Source: Klebsormidium nitens
Lineage: Eukaryota > Plantae > Klebsormidiophyceae
DNA length: 64,000 nucleotides
Reading direction: 5' to 3'
Assembly: GCA_000708835.1 (NCBI GenBank)
Contig: DF237004.1
Location: forward strand, 193,480-257,479
Under the pieces are notes generated by a model, which saw only the letters and a list, made by a program, of their open reading frames with translations, was not told the origin of the DNA and made no database searches. A program made the translations under genes and the position numbers. Numbering within the stretch: the stretch's first letter is position 1; each line of letters begins with the position of its first letter. Shown piece after piece: positions 20,736 to 28,999 of this stretch.

Positions 20736-22381
20736 TTACCGCGTTGTTTGTGGCCGTTCATCTGGCGTTGCTATCTGATAGTTTGGGGCGGTAAGAGTGT
20801 CCACATCAGGAGGCAGACGCAAGCCTGGCCGAGGCTCGATCTCTGGTAGAGGAATGCTGTTTCGCTGCTTTGCGAGCTCGAGGAGAACCTAAGGACCAGA
20901 AAGCGCTCAGTCACCAACTTTGAAAGTTTATCAAGGAGCCCGCGCATCTGCCAGACGTTTCAAAGTGCTTAGGGGCAAACGAGTGCTGCCTACATAGAGG
21001 CTGGTTTTGCAAGACAAGGAACCAATCAAATGTTTGTCCTGGACAAATTAACAAAGAGCTAGGTCGATCCGTGAGGGTCAGTAAGCGTCAGATCAGCAAG
21101 ACATGTGGGTAACTTGCTTGTGAGAGTCATCTGTTATTGCACCATCCGCAAATTTGAAATAACTTTCATCCTCCTGCTTATCGATCTACACAAATGCGGC
21201 GGACCTTCTCAGCCGTGTACATCAATACCTATAACAGAGACCAGCATAATTGTTCCCTGTACATCAGATACTTTAAGTAGAGACCAGAAGACAACAACAC
21301 ACTGCGCTTCGCACTTTATTCTCGGTGCCTCACCTCTCTCGGTGGGGGCTGCGTGAAGGAAAAGTTGACCCGAGACTGGATTGCGAGCTTCACATCATCA
21401 ATGTCGATTGCCGGCTTGTTTGCATGCTCCGAGTAGGTTCGTGCGTCGCTGAGGGCGTCGGTGAAGTATCCTGCACATAGTTGCACCCAGATTTCTTACT
21501 ACGGAAGTTACTGTGTAGGTATTGGGCACAGGTGACATTTTTGTTTAGGGGGAATGCACTTACAGTTGAAGGATACAATTGAGTTGAGCAATGCCGACAA
21601 GCTGGAACGCAACGCTGATCGTTGATGCCCAATTCGGACCACATGAGCGAACAAGATGCGGGGACAGGTTCCTTGAATGCTTATGTTTTCACACGTAAAA
21701 CGAGTTGTTTACTGCTGAGATCCACGCGTTTGCCCACATGTTTCCAACTCTGTTCAACGTTCAAAGGCAAGGGCTGTCTGCTTAGAGTGCTCAATTCTCA
21801 CATTTCTTGAAAAGCGAGATGGACTATTGACAATGCCACCTGAAATGCTGTCACTTAGAAAGATCCCTGAGAGAGTGAATGTCTGATTCCTCATAATCCT
21901 GAACCACCACAGCCTTGATTTCTTCGATTGATGAAGAATCACAGCAAAATGGGGCACCGGTCGTATGAGAGCCCCGCAATATAATCCCAGGAGTCCTAAT
22001 CTCCTCACACAAAATGCAGTGAAGGCTTCCTTCGCGGGTAAAATGTTGACCGATGGAAAGGGTGTCCAAGAGGACGACCGCAAGGCACTACCCGCAGCTT
22101 ACAACGTCCGTCACTTTTCACCGGGGCACGAACTGATGGACCAGACAAGAGCAGCTTTCAAGTCACACCACCAACACCTCTCTCCCTTCCAATGTTCCAA
22201 ATGTCTATCATTCTAGCGGAACTACTGCCTGATCAAGGTTGGCAATCCGCTTACGATACATGAACTCCAGGAGCTGGTTCACAACTCGCGGCTCGTAGTT
22301 TTCCACCCCCATCGATCGCAGTATCTCGATGATGACCTTAGCATCCTGCGGAAGATCTCCAGCAGCCCCAGCGTCCGCCAT
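20736..22381 (-). CDS. TAF9: TFIID subunit TAF9 (histone-fold)
   Basis: Three exons not in the ORF track: 22381-22255 ([43 protein letters not shown]), 21470-21334 ([45 protein letters not shown]), 20888-20736 ([39 protein letters not shown]). GT-AG introns, phases fit, classic TAF9 motifs. Confidence 0.96.
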
Positions 22382-23680
22382 TTCCGAGGGCGATGCTTCT
22401 CAAAATTGAGCTGCCGCCATTGGACCAGCTCCTCTGCGCTAGGAGTAGAAATTTGACAGCGTACAATATTAGCCATGCAGCAAAAGCACGCAAGCTGACA
22501 ACTAGAACGACGTGCTAGCCATAGATGATAGAATTTGTCGTGTCACCGAACTCCTGGGTGACTATGCCGATTCTGCTCGGGCTAAAAAACAAAGTATTGA
22601 GTTAGGGCAACTCCCAGCCGCCGATGAGTCACAAGCAATAAGTTTGAACGGCGCTTCTTTCAGGGAGCTTTCGTACAATTGCTTCGCAGCGGCTACTGGT
22701 TGGTTTGAATTTGAAACTTATAGTCAGGTAAAACCCCTTGAATTAATTCAAGTGATTTTCAGCGCGCGCGGCCTGGCGTCGTGCCGTGCATTGAATCATT
22801 GAGACCGTCGATGACGGTGAACGTGCTGAACGTGCAGCAGATCGACGGTTGAAATTCTACCCCAACTTCCCTCGAAACTTTCAAACGTGCGGAAGCTTGT
22901 TCAACAAAACTTCTGCCAGCTCAGCGGTCATGGCTCCGGCCACGTTGAAGACGGTTGAACGTTCTCTCTGCCATTGCAGGCTTCCTTGGTGCAGCCCCAG
23001 CGCCATGGCTGCCGGCAGCCGGCAGCTGCAGTCTCTGCAGCAGCACTGGCAATCTGCTCGTGGAGTTTCTGTTGGGCCCTGACACTGACAGAAGGTGTCA
23101 GGAGTTTGGTTGTTGTGCTTCCCCTTCCTGACAATGTAGAGCACTTTATCCTTAGCTGAAGGCAAGTCCTAAAGCCAAAGGAAGATAATTGCTCTTCATT
23201 AGAAGCTTGGTAATGTACCAAGGTAGATGATTCTGGTAGGACTTAGGTTTCAATCAGCGTTTCATCTAGTCTAATCAGCATTGAACTGGTTTAGAGGTAC
23301 AAGTGCAAGCTCCGGAGGGTGAGCGTTTGTCTGAAGGACCGAAGGAAAGGCATTGCAATGGCGGTCACAGAAAGCAGCAGTCCTCTGGCTGATCTGCATT
23401 CAGTCCATTTGCGAATTGCACGGACAATGGAACAGGTAAAATGCCCAACATTGCTGCCCTTGTTTTTGACAGCAGGTTAAGCACTCTTGAAGATCTTCAT
23501 GCATCCCTTCTTCAATGGTAATACAAAGACTGGAAGACAAATTTTCCTTGAGGATACACTTTGTCCTCGAAACAAACGCAACTGTCTGCACAAACAACCG
23601 ATTGTAAGAGTTTTACCCTCTGTCGTCAAGCAAGGGGAGCCCTTCGTACCTTCACTCTTTGGAGGTCCTGATCAATGCAG

Positions 23681-26600
23681 GGCTTGATGCCAAAAACAGC
23701 ATGTTCACTAAGGCGAGGTAGGACTCGACAATTGATCAGGGGCAGTGCAACCCCGCATGCCCAACAGGCCTTGTTTTCTAGCAAGTTTGTCAGCGGCATT
23801 GAGAACATGAGGCAGAGGGTATGAGCTTTGTGCTTTGTGCTTGGTAAGTTCACCTTCTTCTCCTCAATGCCTTCGCAAGTTCAAGGGGTATCCTGCAATC
23901 TTGATGTTTGTTTTTGTGCTCATTTGCAGCTAGACGGTGCCTTTGTACGTGCTCACAAGCTGGGCATGGCTGGCCAGCTCTCCTTGGGCGAGCTGCGCGC
24001 TTTTGTCTTCTCAATGGAGCAAGTGGAGGCAGAAGTGCAGGTACGTTTTAACTCTCGGAAGCGTCCAATTCGTCCTAGTCATACTTCATTTCTGATCGCT
24101 GTTGTCCCAGAGTCCTCACCATTGGCAGTTGTCGCTTAGCAAGCGCTTGTGATTATGAAATACAGATCTCTTTCAATACCTACCATCAGGACAAGTCAAT
24201 CTGTGACGGAGCATCACTTTACCATTAGCGCTCGACGCATGAACGAGCGTCGAACTCAGCCTTTCAACGTGCAGAACGTGGGCTGGACTCAGTCATAAGA
24301 ACAGATTGTCAAAAGAGAAGTTGGCGCAATGGTACCATGAAAGACTTGTCTTGTGTTCTCGATTATGTGAACAAGGATCAAGCATTCAGAACCTTCTCAC
24401 CTGTCAATTGTGAGCCCCCAAAGCCCCCGGTTTTTTAACTTTGCCATATTCGTGTTCCGAAATCCTGTGAAGTACTCCAACTGATTTTCTGCTTGCTGTC
24501 TGCCTGCAGAAATGGGCCCCTCTCTTCTCGGAGGCCGCTTTGCGCCCCCAAGGACCTTCCCTCAGTATGCATCTCCCAACCATCAACACAAGCGACCAGG
24601 CGCATACTCCCACGTCCCCACTTTCGCCCAATCCCAGCACGCCAGCTGGCTCCGCAGAGGGACCGTTTACCACCCCCCTGACAGGCCCTCTCCTCGTCCA
24701 CGGCTTCCCTAGCGAAAACCTCGACTTCACCCCAGTCAGTGTGAACACCCCCAGAGCCTTTTCACACCACCCCACTCCTTTCCCTGAGCACCGGTCTGAG
24801 GACTCCGAAGAAGAGGCCATGGAAGACGAGGACGCTCCTGAAGGGGGCCCGGTCCCCGTCTCGGGGGGTGGTTTAGAGGGGGAAGCGTCCCCCATGCCGC
24901 CGACGCCGAGCATGCCCTCACCCCCCCGCTGCTGCTTTGTCCTCAAGAACCGGGACAGCAATGCAAGCAGCAGTAGCTTCACAATGACCCCGTCGAGCGC
25001 GTCTCCCCGAACCCCAGTCTCTTTCCAGAGAGGCCCTCTTTCGGCAATGGGACACAATCAGGTGGCTGAGAACCAGCGCGTGGGGCTGGCTTCACAAGGC
25101 CTCTTGAGCAAAGGGGAGGGAAAGAGGGGAGCGAGGGCTGGGGATGAGTTGGAAGACCAGGAGAATCAAGGCCCTGTTGGGGCGCTGGGCGACTTTGGGC
25201 TGGAGCGCCAGCCTGGTAAGGAAGGACTCCACAAGGCCCCTCTTGGAAAGGTTCCGAATAAAAGTGGAACTGGTTCGTTTCTGTTGCATCACGCTGGACC
25301 AGTCTAGGCACGAAGCTTGTCATTGAAAGCAGCTTGATGGACTGCAGTGTCGATAAAACTCCAGCTGCAAAGCCTTGAGTTCACCATCCGCTGGATCGTA
25401 TCGCTTGATTACATCAGGTGACGTTAGCGAAACTCCCTCCGAGTCTGATCCTCAAAAGTTATGCCCTGGTGCAGCGCTCGTCGAACCAACACACAACTGG
25501 GCGCAGGCGAGCCTCCAGCGCGCTCGCAGCATGGGGGGGATGCACACAGGGCCTGCACCCAGCCCATTCCGCACCCCTGGTGAGCAATGTTCGCCAAATG
25601 AATTGCTAGATTGACTTGCACCCTGCTTTCGTTTCACACTTTGTTGCTTGCATTGCGATGCCAGTCGAGTCCATGTGTAAAGGGTTTGTGAACTGGAGGT
25701 AGTTAGGCTCAACCGAAAACGCGCGAAGCCCAGAGTCTGAGTTTGCTCGGCAGTATGGGAGAGTTCGGCCGTTCAATGCGACACACTTCTGCGATAAGTA
25801 CGTTCTCGTACCTGTAATTCTCCGCGTATTCTTTGCTCTCACTCGGGACCAGTGCTTGCTTTGTGCGCATGATGATCAATACGTCCACCTTGGCATAAGA
25901 TCGAAGAGGGCGTCTGGATACTGGTCTCCCCTCCGGTACTCTGGCAACTCTTATGTGACTTTAGAGGCGTGTGACTTCGAATAGGCGCCCGGGAGACGGG
26001 TGGGGTAGGTAAGGTGGTTAGGGTGGGTTGGGGTCTGGAGCGGGTACTTATTTTGGTTAGGTTTTTGAGATTACGTGCCCGGGTAAGTCGAATGTTAGGT
26101 CACACGCCCGTCAGGTCACACGAGAATTGCCAATATCCCTCCGGTCATGTATCTGGCAAACCTGTACACCCATTCTGAACACCTTTACACCCCTGTACTC
26201 GCCATTGTGCGGCCAGGTCCTACAGATTTGCAATCACCGATGAGGTCCCACCGACAAACGAGAATTACGAGGGGAAAAGGAAGATTGAAAAGGGGTTTAC
26301 TGAAAGCTTTCAACCCTGCGACTACGGTGCGGCCTCCAAACGGACTCACTAAGTAACCCCAGCAGGCCGTTCGATCTATTCAAATCGGACGAAGATGAGT
26401 ATTGTTTCTGATTTCGATCCTCCTCATTCCAGGTGTCACTCGCCTTATGCGGCTGTCGCCCGGCGGCCCTTCCCCCGTCTCCCCCGTCCAGAACCTCTCC
26501 TTCGACTCCCCGGCAACTTTCGCCACGTGGCAGAAGAAGACCCGCCCACGCGCCGGACAGGCCCCCAGAGACGTTTCGGACGGTTCCCCCAATCTCCGGA

Positions 26601-28999
26601 CGCCCGAAATGGACAGCCCGCCCGCTACCACTGAGCTGCAGGCAATGGCGGGTCCGGACTTTGAGGCGACGTCACCCCCAATCAGAGGGCAAAGTTTCGG
26701 GCCCTCTGGAAAGGACCGGACGTTCTTGGACGACCGCGCGATGTCGGACGCCGAACGGCTCGGACGGGTGGAGCAGCTTCTGCGGGGGGGGGTCGAGGAC
26801 TCGGACGGAGAGCCCGCGAACCCGTTCGACTTTCCGGAGCGATTTGCGCCTGTGGGCGATTTGGGGCTGACGGACCACAGCCCGGCAAAGGCTCCCGCGC
26901 GCCCCGGCGAGTGGGTCGGGCGCAAAACCGTCGACGTGGCAGAGGTGATGCGGGGCGATGACGTGGCAGCGTGCGATTGGAAGGACGGCGTGGCGGCCCT
27001 GCGGGACCTCCACGTGTCCAAGTCCGCGACGCTGCCACATGTCATTGATCCGTTGGAGGTCGACGTCAGGCCGGACTTTGAGCCGTTGGATGGGGCCGCT
27101 GCTCTGCTGTCGAAAAAGGGGTTTGAGACACGGGGTTCAGGGTTTCTGCGGGAGGAGGATTTCGGCCTAGAGGGATCCCCCGGCTGGATGGACGGCCGGG
27201 CGGCGCTCAAAGCGTATGGCTTGGATACGCCCGGGGGCCCCAAGGCCAATCCCTCCCGGTTAGGTGAATCGAGCGCCAAACTTGAAGCCCGTTCGCCCCT
27301 GAAAAGCTCACCGGTTGGCAGCCCCCGCGCAACGTGGCAGCAAACAAAGTCGAAGACGGTCGGAGAGTGGGTGAACACGAGCGCTGTCACCACCCCGGGG
27401 GGGGTAGGTTCGCCTGGGGAAGAGACCCCCGGGCGCTTGCTGCCGCCCTGGGGAGTCAGGACCAGCGACGGGAAGGCGCACCGGAGGAGTCGCAGCCATG
27501 ACCTGGGCGGGAATGGCACCCCGAGGAGCGACCTCGGGTTCTACAGCCCCCGGGGTCCCAAGAAAGGGGAGTGGGCGCCAAGGAATGCTAAGGGTGAGAG
27601 GTTCGGCGAAGCATTTGCTCTTCAAATCTGGTGAATGTCTCCAGACTGTTCGTGGCTGAAGCTTAGCGAGCATTAGATACAAAAATTGCAGAATCTGCAG
27701 TTAGACATCAAGCTAGCATACTTCGCAACTGAACCGGACTTTGAAGTCTGGACAGGACAGTATCAGCTACGGGAACGGCTCCAGCACTTCATACCGGTGA
27801 CGACGACACGCAATCTTAGCAGAGGCTCGAGAGATGCCCAAACCAGCCGAGTTTTCCAGTCTTAACCATCCAGTGGCATTTACTGAGTTCCGTTCGGCTC
27901 CAGATCCCGCACTCGACGAGGCTGACGTCATCAATGACGGCAAAGAGAACATCAACCCCAACGTGGGCGCCGCGGCCCCCGCTCCCTCCGGTCTGGACCT
28001 CTCCGCCTTTCCCCCGGTGTTTCGTACCGGGGAGGCTGCCCAACAACTGCTCACGGTACGCTTGACAGCCCCTGTATTCGTACAGTTGGAAAGCCTTTTA
28101 AATGTTTGGCTTCTTGCTTTTTGCTAGTAGTTGGGTTGTAACCAGCCCTCTAATACGTGGATAATTTCGACTTGCAAATCACTGTCAATCTCGGTCCGCA
28201 AGGTACTTGCATGGAATTGACGATCAGCCAATACAACAGCCCAACGAAGACCTATGCTACATTTGCAACCGGATACCGTGCAAAAGTATGGAACGACACC
28301 TTCGAGCTTGCCAACTGCGAGCTGTTGTAGAGCAAACTCGCACTGCTACAATTTATCGGCGCTGATGGAAGATCATTCCCGTTGCCAGGTGTTCCAGCAG
28401 TTCGCGCCTCCAGAAGCCCCTGAGGGCGGAACGCCGACAAGGAGAAACGGCTCCTTGGTAAGCATCGACCGAGCGTTACCGTCTTAGGCACAATCGCGAG
28501 CCACACTGCCTCGTACAGAGGCGGAAAGTCTCTCCACAGCTCGCTGCGCGCATGGTATTTATGCAAAGCTCTGCATATGATTCCAGAGCAGGCCTTTATT
28601 CGGCCCTCACGTATCTGGACTCTTGTTGCGTGATTCCTGGAGGGAGCTTTTTCGCCTGAACTTCGATTGGCTCCTCAATAGTGTTTGAATATTCTGCCAC
28701 TGAATTAGTAATTTACTAGCTTAATAGGTTCAGGATTTGGGTTCTCTATCAGCACGCGCCCGTGGCAGTGGTTGATTAACCCTGACGTGACCCGTCGAAA
28801 CTTGCCTGAAGTTCCAGGCCCCTCTGCTGCAAGAGATGACACTTCCTCTTGCATTCCGCAGTCTTTGTCGGAACTGGACGGTCTGCTTATGGGCTACGGA
28901 ACTGAGCGCCTGTCCCTGCTGCTGGACTTGCTCGCCTCCCGGGGGGCCCTCCAGCCCTTCGTCGTGGGCCGCCAGATGCGCTGGGAAAGACCCCCCTGA
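23681..28999 (+). CDS. Multi-exon protein with an N-terminal DASH-complex Ask1-like segment, long S/T/P-rich disordered middle, KEN box and small C-terminal globular domain; further 5' exons (about 23000-23520) unresolved
   Basis: Phase-consistent chain 23681-23717, 23782-23818, 23930-24040, 24510-25215, 25418-25579, 26433-27593, 27904-28055, 28389-28457, 28862-28999(stop). N-terminal ..IENMRQRLDGAFVRAHKL..EQVEAEVQKWAPLFSEAA resembles remembered Ask1 consensus QEIDxNFSRAHRI..SKFWKQFFEAS. Gene structure is well supported; family call is motif-level only. Confidence 0.6.

Follow-up and report, generated by a model that had tools for sequence, protein, structure and literature searches.

The Dam1/DASH and Ska complexes are the textbook pair of unrelated couplers that do the same job and have nearly mutually exclusive distributions, Ska being the functional counterpart in animals and land plants. 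It is debated whether this pattern arose by horizontal transfer or whether the ancestor had both couplers, which were then lost differentially. Here we analyse KFL_000550300, a multi-exon gene on the plus strand of the streptophyte green alga Klebsormidium nitens (positions 23358-28999 of a 64,000-nucleotide stretch of contig DF237004.1, hereafter the window, to which all coordinates refer), whose deposited product of 816 residues (GAQ80500.1, labelled P0008 below) is annotated as a "hypothetical protein". From sequence comparison we consider it likely, with a probability of roughly 70%, that the gene encodes an orthologue of Ask1, a subunit of the fungal-type kinetochore complex Dam1/DASH, which couples chromosomes to microtubules, in its ancestral, non-Dikarya form. 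Within Archaeplastida, a survey of 2017 reported the Dam1 complex (Dam1-C) in red algae only (PMC5439489).

The closest described proteins are the Ask1 orthologues from outside Dikarya (van Hooff et al., 2017, PMC5579357), which consist of N-terminal helices, a disordered middle rich in Ser/Thr-Pro (S/T-P) and a C-terminal domain. In the sequences of supplement 20 of that study, a C-terminal domain of ~85 residues is common to Ask1 of oomycetes, Aurantiochytrium, Bigelowiella and Cyanidioschyzon and is also found in Capsaspora, Mucor, Phycomyces, Coemansia and microsporidia; Ask1 of yeast, Neurospora, Cryptococcus and Ustilago is without it. We compared the algal protein with the curated sequences of Aurantiochytrium limacinum, Albugo, Phytophthora, Bigelowiella, Cyanidioschyzon, Capsaspora, Mucor and Phycomyces from the same supplement. 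It has the same layout and shares the N-terminal D..[FI]..[AS]H and W..[LF]F, but comes from a streptophyte green alga, a group without a reported Dam1-C subunit, is longer (most likely 839 residues, see below), has an H-to-W loop that is longer by 2-3 residues and contains a middle region without detectable similarity to that of other Ask1 proteins. With Dikarya Ask1 (Pfam DASH_Ask1, PF08655) it shares the N-terminal position of the helix-loop-helix and a tail rich in cyclin-dependent kinase (CDK) sites, the fungal L-Q-E-I-D-x-N-F-S-R-A-H-R-I and F-W-K-Q-F-F corresponding to M-E-Q-L-D-G-A-F-V-R-A-H-K-L and K-W-A-P-L-F in the alga. In contrast to the algal protein, the Dikarya Ask1 sequences of the supplement have no C-terminal domain, and no Pfam or PDB sequence match between the two was obtained.

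The C-Terminal Domain Resembles That of Non-Dikarya Ask1

The last ~90 residues of the algal protein match the C-terminal domain common to the published non-Dikarya Ask1 orthologues, and it is this match that tips the balance toward Ask1. The signature shared by these domains reads F-[DE]-L..F-P..F-[QR].G.GA.Q ... L-L-D.L.S-R..L.P-F.V.....W. Its first part appears in the alga as L-D-L-S-A-F-P-P-V-F-R-T-G-E-A-A-Q-Q, compared with F-D-L-K-L-F-P-H-L-F-Q-S-G-E-G-A-S-Q in Aurantiochytrium, and its second as L-S-L-L-L-D-L-L-A-S-R-G-A-L-Q-P-F-V-V-G-R-Q-M-R-W, compared with L-E-L-M-L-D-M-L-V-S-R-G-F-L-R-P-F-T-V-E-N-H-L-Y-W. A hand alignment to the A. limacinum protein contains 34 identities in 77 positions (~44%) with one 12-residue gap and corresponds to a raw BLOSUM62 score of ~147, or ~60 bits, by manual arithmetic rather than program output.

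The domain is encoded by the last three of eight exons. Exon 6 (27904..28055, P0008 residues 698-748) carries a KENxxP box, with the KEN codons at 27942-27950, followed by the L-D-L-S-A-F-P-P-V-F-R-T-G motif and the first helix of the domain (27993-28055). Exon 7 (28389..28457, 23 codons, residues 749-771) encodes a variable linker within the domain, and exon 8 (28862..28999, 45 codons and a TGA stop, residues 772-816) encodes the helix-turn-helix and the beta-hairpin wing (ERLSLLLDLLASRGALQPFVVGRQMRW). We scanned all six frames of the window (~128,000 positions) with two patterns whose residue classes were taken only from published, non-Klebsormidium Ask1 C-termini. Pattern A (27993-28046) and pattern B plus wing (28910-28984) matched once each, in order and on the plus strand, and there was no match in 100 triplet shuffles of the window. 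Each pattern also gave a single match at the orthologous place in three Klebsormidium-like genomes (L001-L003, namely two Joint Genome Institute (JGI) contigs of 99 and 135 kb and one Logan contig). Because the patterns were written after the algal sequence had been seen, some bias in them is possible.

We also examined the predicted fold. The AlphaFold2 (AF2) model has a helix-strand-helix-helix-strand-strand (H-b-H-H-b-b) topology at low confidence (predicted local distance difference test, pLDDT, of 52), all of its structural neighbours are winged-helix proteins with 10-22% identity, and a profile of the domain searched against the PDB gave a weak match to the winged-helix region of AlpH only. 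On these three grounds, we predict a winged-helix fold for the C-terminal domain; our literature search found no description of a winged helix in Ask1. Generic winged helices (MarR/ArsR, DsrD, Rpc34 and O-methyltransferase N-domains) have the same predicted topology as the last ~85 residues of the algal protein, but remain at that 10-22% identity and are without its F-P..F-R.G lead-in and P-F-V-V...W wing. Judged by sequence, the similarity to the Ask1 orthologues is thus far above the generic winged-helix level, and searches for Ask1 orthologues may do better with the C-terminal domain than with the N-terminal profile.

RNA-Like Contigs Define the Gene Model and a Probable Longer N-Terminus

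To define the exons, we placed on 23200-26400 the contigs of four public runs, which come from three studies; each run gave one long contig. The runs were treated as RNA because their contigs are spliced, the RNA nature being a guess in the run record; they contain ~0.4-0.5 of the sampled words of the stretch, near the exon share. Each long contig omits 23436-23929, 24041-24509 and 25216-25474, all three bounded by GT..AG, and passes from ~25579-25582 to sequence at 26433 onward. The joints 23435|23930, 24040|24510 and 25215|25475 were therefore seen in spliced contigs of all four runs. All eight derived exons translate with 100% identity into the deposited GAQ80500.1, which we had reached through the 90% cluster of one ORF (open reading frame) fragment from a close relative, and all seven introns are GT..AG.

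The deposited model begins at the second ATG of exon 1 (M-E-Q) and uses only the last three codons of this exon. Exon 1 as we define it (23358..23435) comprises an ATG and 26 codons, ends in a GT donor and supplies the initial half of the first helix in the Ask1-like N-terminal domain. An RNA-like contig covers 23200-23432 unbroken and then joins 23927/23930, and the exon is conserved, with its GT donor, in L001-L003. Over its first 23 codons, the proportion of nonsynonymous differences (pN) among the four species is 0.15-0.24 versus 0.53-0.75 for synonymous ones (pS), while the sequence directly 5′ of the ATG is unalignable and contains in-frame stops. Since the ATG and the next 23 codons are conserved and the upstream sequence has diverged and carries stops, the real product is most likely 839 residues long and the deposited model 23 residues too short, the 23 conserved N-terminal codons at 23358-23426 being absent from GAQ80500.1.

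A sequence-only reading of this DNA had joined small exons into a peptide that it compared with the Ask1 domain. Two parts of that peptide are real, as exon 2 (23930..24040, LDGAF...EAEVQ) and the exon that begins at 24510 (KWAPLF...) are present in the spliced contigs of all four runs and in P0008. The other two, the mini-exons 23681-23717 (GLDAKNSMFTKAS) and 23782-23818 (KFVSGIENMRQR), both lie within intron 1 (23436-23929), are skipped by the spliced contigs and are absent from P0008. The sole contig that covers them (23703-23887) is unspliced, with a depth of 2.5 versus 86 for the spliced form (~3%), and in the closest relative, L003, they carry frame-breaking deletions of 5 and 17 nt. Low-depth unspliced contigs occur both there and at 24037-24265 in intron 2 (2.4-2.5 versus 42-86); these are pre-mRNA or DNA traces in the RNA libraries.

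A Predicted N-Terminal Helix-Loop-Helix with Ask1-Like Motifs

With the correct splice, the N-terminal ~70 residues read as a helix-loop-helix. AF2 modelling of P0008 residues 1-66 (with tiled orthologue rows) predicted a helix at 2-16, a loop and a second helix at 22-51 with a mean pLDDT of 76. Exon 2 contributes 37 codons (P0008 residues 4-40) that hold the L-D-G-A-F-V-R-A-H-K-L motif, the loop and the start of helix 2 and are 65-86% identical in the three relatives, and the domain ends with K-W-A-P-L-F-S-E-A at the beginning of exon 3.

Comparison by eye and by pattern identified both core motifs of Ask1, L-D-G-A-F-V-R-A-H and W-A-P-L-F. The algal R-I-A-R-T-M-E-Q-L-D-G-A-F-V-R-A-H corresponds to R-I-T-F-L-L-Q-E-I-D-E-N-I-C-A-S-H in Albugo (PMC5579357, supplement 20) and to S-I-T-L-T-L-Q-E-I-D-S-N-F-S-R-A-H in Neurospora, its D-G-A-F-V-R-A to D-S-N-F-V-R-A in Aurantiochytrium, and its Q-K-W-A-P-L-F-S-E to Q-I-W-S-P-L-F-T-E in Albugo. 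The spacing from the Asp to the Trp is 37 residues in the alga, compared with 34 in Albugo and 35 in S. pombe. A residue-class pattern for the N-terminal domain matches P0008 residues 4-46; it spans an exon junction and was therefore used without a window-shuffle control. The parallel drawn by the sequence-only reading between this region and the Ask1 domain thus holds for D..F..AH and W.PLF, although half of its spliced peptide was wrong and the parallel is without statistical support. The fit to Ask1 improved with the RNA-backed splice because the false exons had displaced the real first helix. Taken alone, the N-terminal resemblance to Ask1 is nevertheless weak. A search of the ESM Atlas with exon 2 and with P0008 residues 1-62 gave no usable match, the structural rows being generic helices. 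Nor did either of two scans of metagenomes, run with the alignments of exons 2 and 3, produce a candidate that passed tblastn.

A Disordered Middle Rich in Putative CDK Sites

The terminal domains are separated by ~640 residues rich in Pro, Ser, Gly and Thr. This region is encoded by the larger part of exon 3 (24510..25215, P0008 residues 41-275), which is disordered, S/T-P-rich and contains QENQGP, by exon 4 (25475..25579, 35 codons, residues 276-311) and by exon 5 (26433..27593, 387 codons, residues 311-698), both of them disordered. The whole-protein model of the ESM Atlas is likewise mostly disordered (pLDDT 0.42). There are 36 S/T-P sites compared with 14 expected from composition, six of them within full [ST]P.[KR] CDK sites, which bears out the CDK-site-rich tail proposed from the sequence, and the KENxxP box follows at P0008 residue 711.

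Alignments of exons 3 and 5 show that the middle contains several blocks that are invariant among the four species. One of them, in exon 3 at 24870-25010 (PPTPSM.SPPR.CFVLKNRDSNASSSSF.TPSSASP.TPVSF.RGPL), is conserved in six of six fragments from relatives, and its Ser/Pro-rich sequence is probably a phospho-dependent binding motif. Another, in exon 5 at 26900-27250 (P0008 ~465-575), comprises ~110 residues from EWVGRKTVDVAEVMRGDDVAA to GWMDGRAALKAYGLDT that are near-invariant in the four species; it has no Pfam family and no relatives, and the disordered region around it is fast-evolving.

The Gene Is Conserved under Purifying Selection

The same gene with the same exon structure is present in L001-L003, where exons 6 and 7 also have their orthologues. 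For the exons of both terminal domains, the ratio of nonsynonymous to synonymous substitution rates (dN/dS) against the three relatives is 0.14-0.16 at a dS of 0.5-1.0. Exon 8 is 93-98% identical in the relatives, with a pN of 0.02-0.07 versus a pS of 0.24-0.53. The gene is therefore shown to be under purifying selection in four Klebsormidium-like genomes.

Assignment to Ask1 and Alternative Explanations

We favour orthology with Ask1 because both ends of the protein resemble Ask1 and stand in the right order, because its middle is phospho-rich like that of Ask1, and because the gene is expressed, contains introns and is under purifying selection. The identity first suggested from the sequence therefore survives and has become more likely, although on different grounds, as the C-terminal match had not been noticed. 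If the protein is Ask1, its N-terminal helices would pack into a helical bundle with partner subunits, by analogy with Ask1 in the solved fungal complex, and the middle would serve as a regulatory region phosphorylated by CDK. The KENxxP box could act as a degron for the anaphase-promoting complex/cyclosome (APC/C), the anaphase ubiquitin ligase, which would confine the protein to mitosis, and the winged helix, lost in Dikarya Ask1, may serve to bind a kinetochore or microtubule partner.

Several observations weigh against this assignment. The C-terminal comparison with published Ask1 was made by eye and with post hoc patterns, the confidence of the C-terminal model is low, and winged helices share generic sequence features, as the weak match to AlpH shows. 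The N-terminal blocks score ~24 bits against Albugo by hand calculation, which is not significant. No Pfam family, DASH_Ask1 included, was found at E<=10 for any exon, for P0008 or for P0008 residues 1-70, where the queries were single exons and P0008, which holds about two-thirds of the N-terminal domain, and where HMMER filters hide weak hits. Searches of the PDB with phmmer and with profile hmmsearch (exon profiles, P0008 residues 1-70 and a tiled N-terminal profile) retrieved no solved Ask1 chain, and Foldseek found nothing with the N-terminal model and was uninformative. To our knowledge, none of the other DASH subunits has been described from a green plant or green alga. A 2023 survey (PMC9998035), whose data set included a Klebsormidium proteome, names Viridiplantae in its discussion as one of the lineages in which Dam1-C would have been lost.

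The best-surviving alternative, which we nevertheless regard as unlikely, is that the gene encodes a cell-cycle protein particular to Klebsormidium and disordered for the most part, whose helical N-terminus and winged-helix C-terminus are both generic and whose resemblance to Ask1 is due to chance or convergence. In its favour, an exhaustive profile search with exon 5 against 1.84 billion representatives retrieved P0007 only and no relative outside the clade, and word searches with exon 3, the L001 exon-5 ORF and the C-terminal region of P0008 yielded at most fragmentary ORFs from close relatives. The absence of any Pfam or PDB family and the AlpH match, to an unrelated winged helix, point in the same direction. 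However, chance would have to account for two separate Ask1-like regions in the right order at the right ends of the protein, and for a C-terminal identity to Aurantiochytrium that is far above that of the generic winged-helix neighbours. Moreover, the F-[DE]-L-x-x-F-P-x-x-F-[QR]-x-G lead-in and the P-F-x-V...W wing are not generic, and within the window they match only here.

It is also conceivable, but improbable, that only the C-terminal winged helix is shared, as a mobile domain, and that the N-terminus is unrelated to Ask1 and the protein no DASH subunit. The lack of statistical support for the N-terminal match would fit such a scenario, as would the published "Ask1" of Capsaspora and the Phytophthora infestans model, whose deposited sequences show the C-terminal domain only. 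In contrast, the N-terminus fits Ask1 both in its motifs and in the distance between them, and did so better once the RNA-backed exon had replaced the wrong ones; in addition, the domain order is identical to that of full-length stramenopile Ask1 and the helix-loop-helix is confidently predicted.

We regard it as very improbable that the gene is a true Ask1 which was not inherited vertically in the green lineage but came from contamination or by horizontal transfer, with a stramenopile as one conceivable donor. In favour of this reading, the S-R-G-x-L-x-P-F-x-V wing motif is closest to labyrinthulid and oomycete sequences and no other Viridiplantae Ask1 has been reported. Against it stand the seven GT..AG introns, the 267-kb K. 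nitens contig and the orthologues of the same exon structure in three Klebsormidium-like genomes at a dS of 0.5-1.0. These exclude contamination, whereas an old transfer is conceivable, if very improbable.

A further set of candidates, Ska3 and HAUS/augmin, had been named as families that might match better than Ask1. Both identities are rejected, as the whole of P0008 gave no profile match to either, or to any other Pfam family, at E<=10. The likeness to the Ska complex (Ska1-3) is one of functional analogy only: Ska3 likewise has a disordered, CDK-phosphorylated tail, and the microtubule-binding domain of Ska1, also a winged helix, is a weak structural neighbour of the algal C-terminal domain (4ca0, rank 27). 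None of the Ska families resembles the algal protein in sequence or by profile, and the N-terminal motifs of the alga are Ask1-like, not Ska-like.

Implications for the Distribution of Dam1/DASH

Apart from the per-species figure of the 2023 survey, the literature covered by our search contained no link between Klebsormidium and Dam1-C and no mention of this gene; in that figure, a single hit may have gone unreported or been discounted. The truncation of the deposited model removes about one-third of the Ask1-like domain and may therefore account for its absence from profile surveys; more generally, orthologues of this kind may escape notice where a model 23 codons short is searched by the N-terminal profile only.

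It is tempting to speculate that, alongside Ska or in its place, Klebsormidium retains a functional Dam1/DASH-type coupler whose other tiny subunits still lack annotation. In that case, the ancestor of Viridiplantae would have possessed Dam1-C, its loss falling later, on the way to land plants, and the ancestral Ask1 would have carried a winged helix, paralleling that of Ska1, which was lost in Dikarya. We regard this wider scenario as tentative and, on balance, doubtful. If the assignment to Ask1 is true, an expressed, intron-bearing Ask1 under selection would be a data point from the green lineage for vertical inheritance, and a culturable alga with a published genome and RNA data would be available for testing whether the two couplers coexisted or one was handed over to the other.

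Surroundings of the Gene

ORF pieces on the minus strand at 21316-22381 read like the histone-fold protein TAF9 and are arranged head to head with the Ask1-like gene, ~1 kb apart. The RNA contigs of the Ask1-like gene extend beyond 23200 toward these TAF9-like ORFs. In a check of synteny, no TAF9-like exon was found upstream of the gene in L001-L003.

Within intron 4, short pieces of unrelated RNA-like contigs align at 25981-26125 with 1-5 mismatches and with both ends loose, which suggests a small dispersed repeat, copies of which are also transcribed at other places in the genome. Finally, a 379-residue ORF runs antisense to exon 5 (26380-27519, minus strand); it most likely arises from the GC richness of the coding strand and is not a gene.

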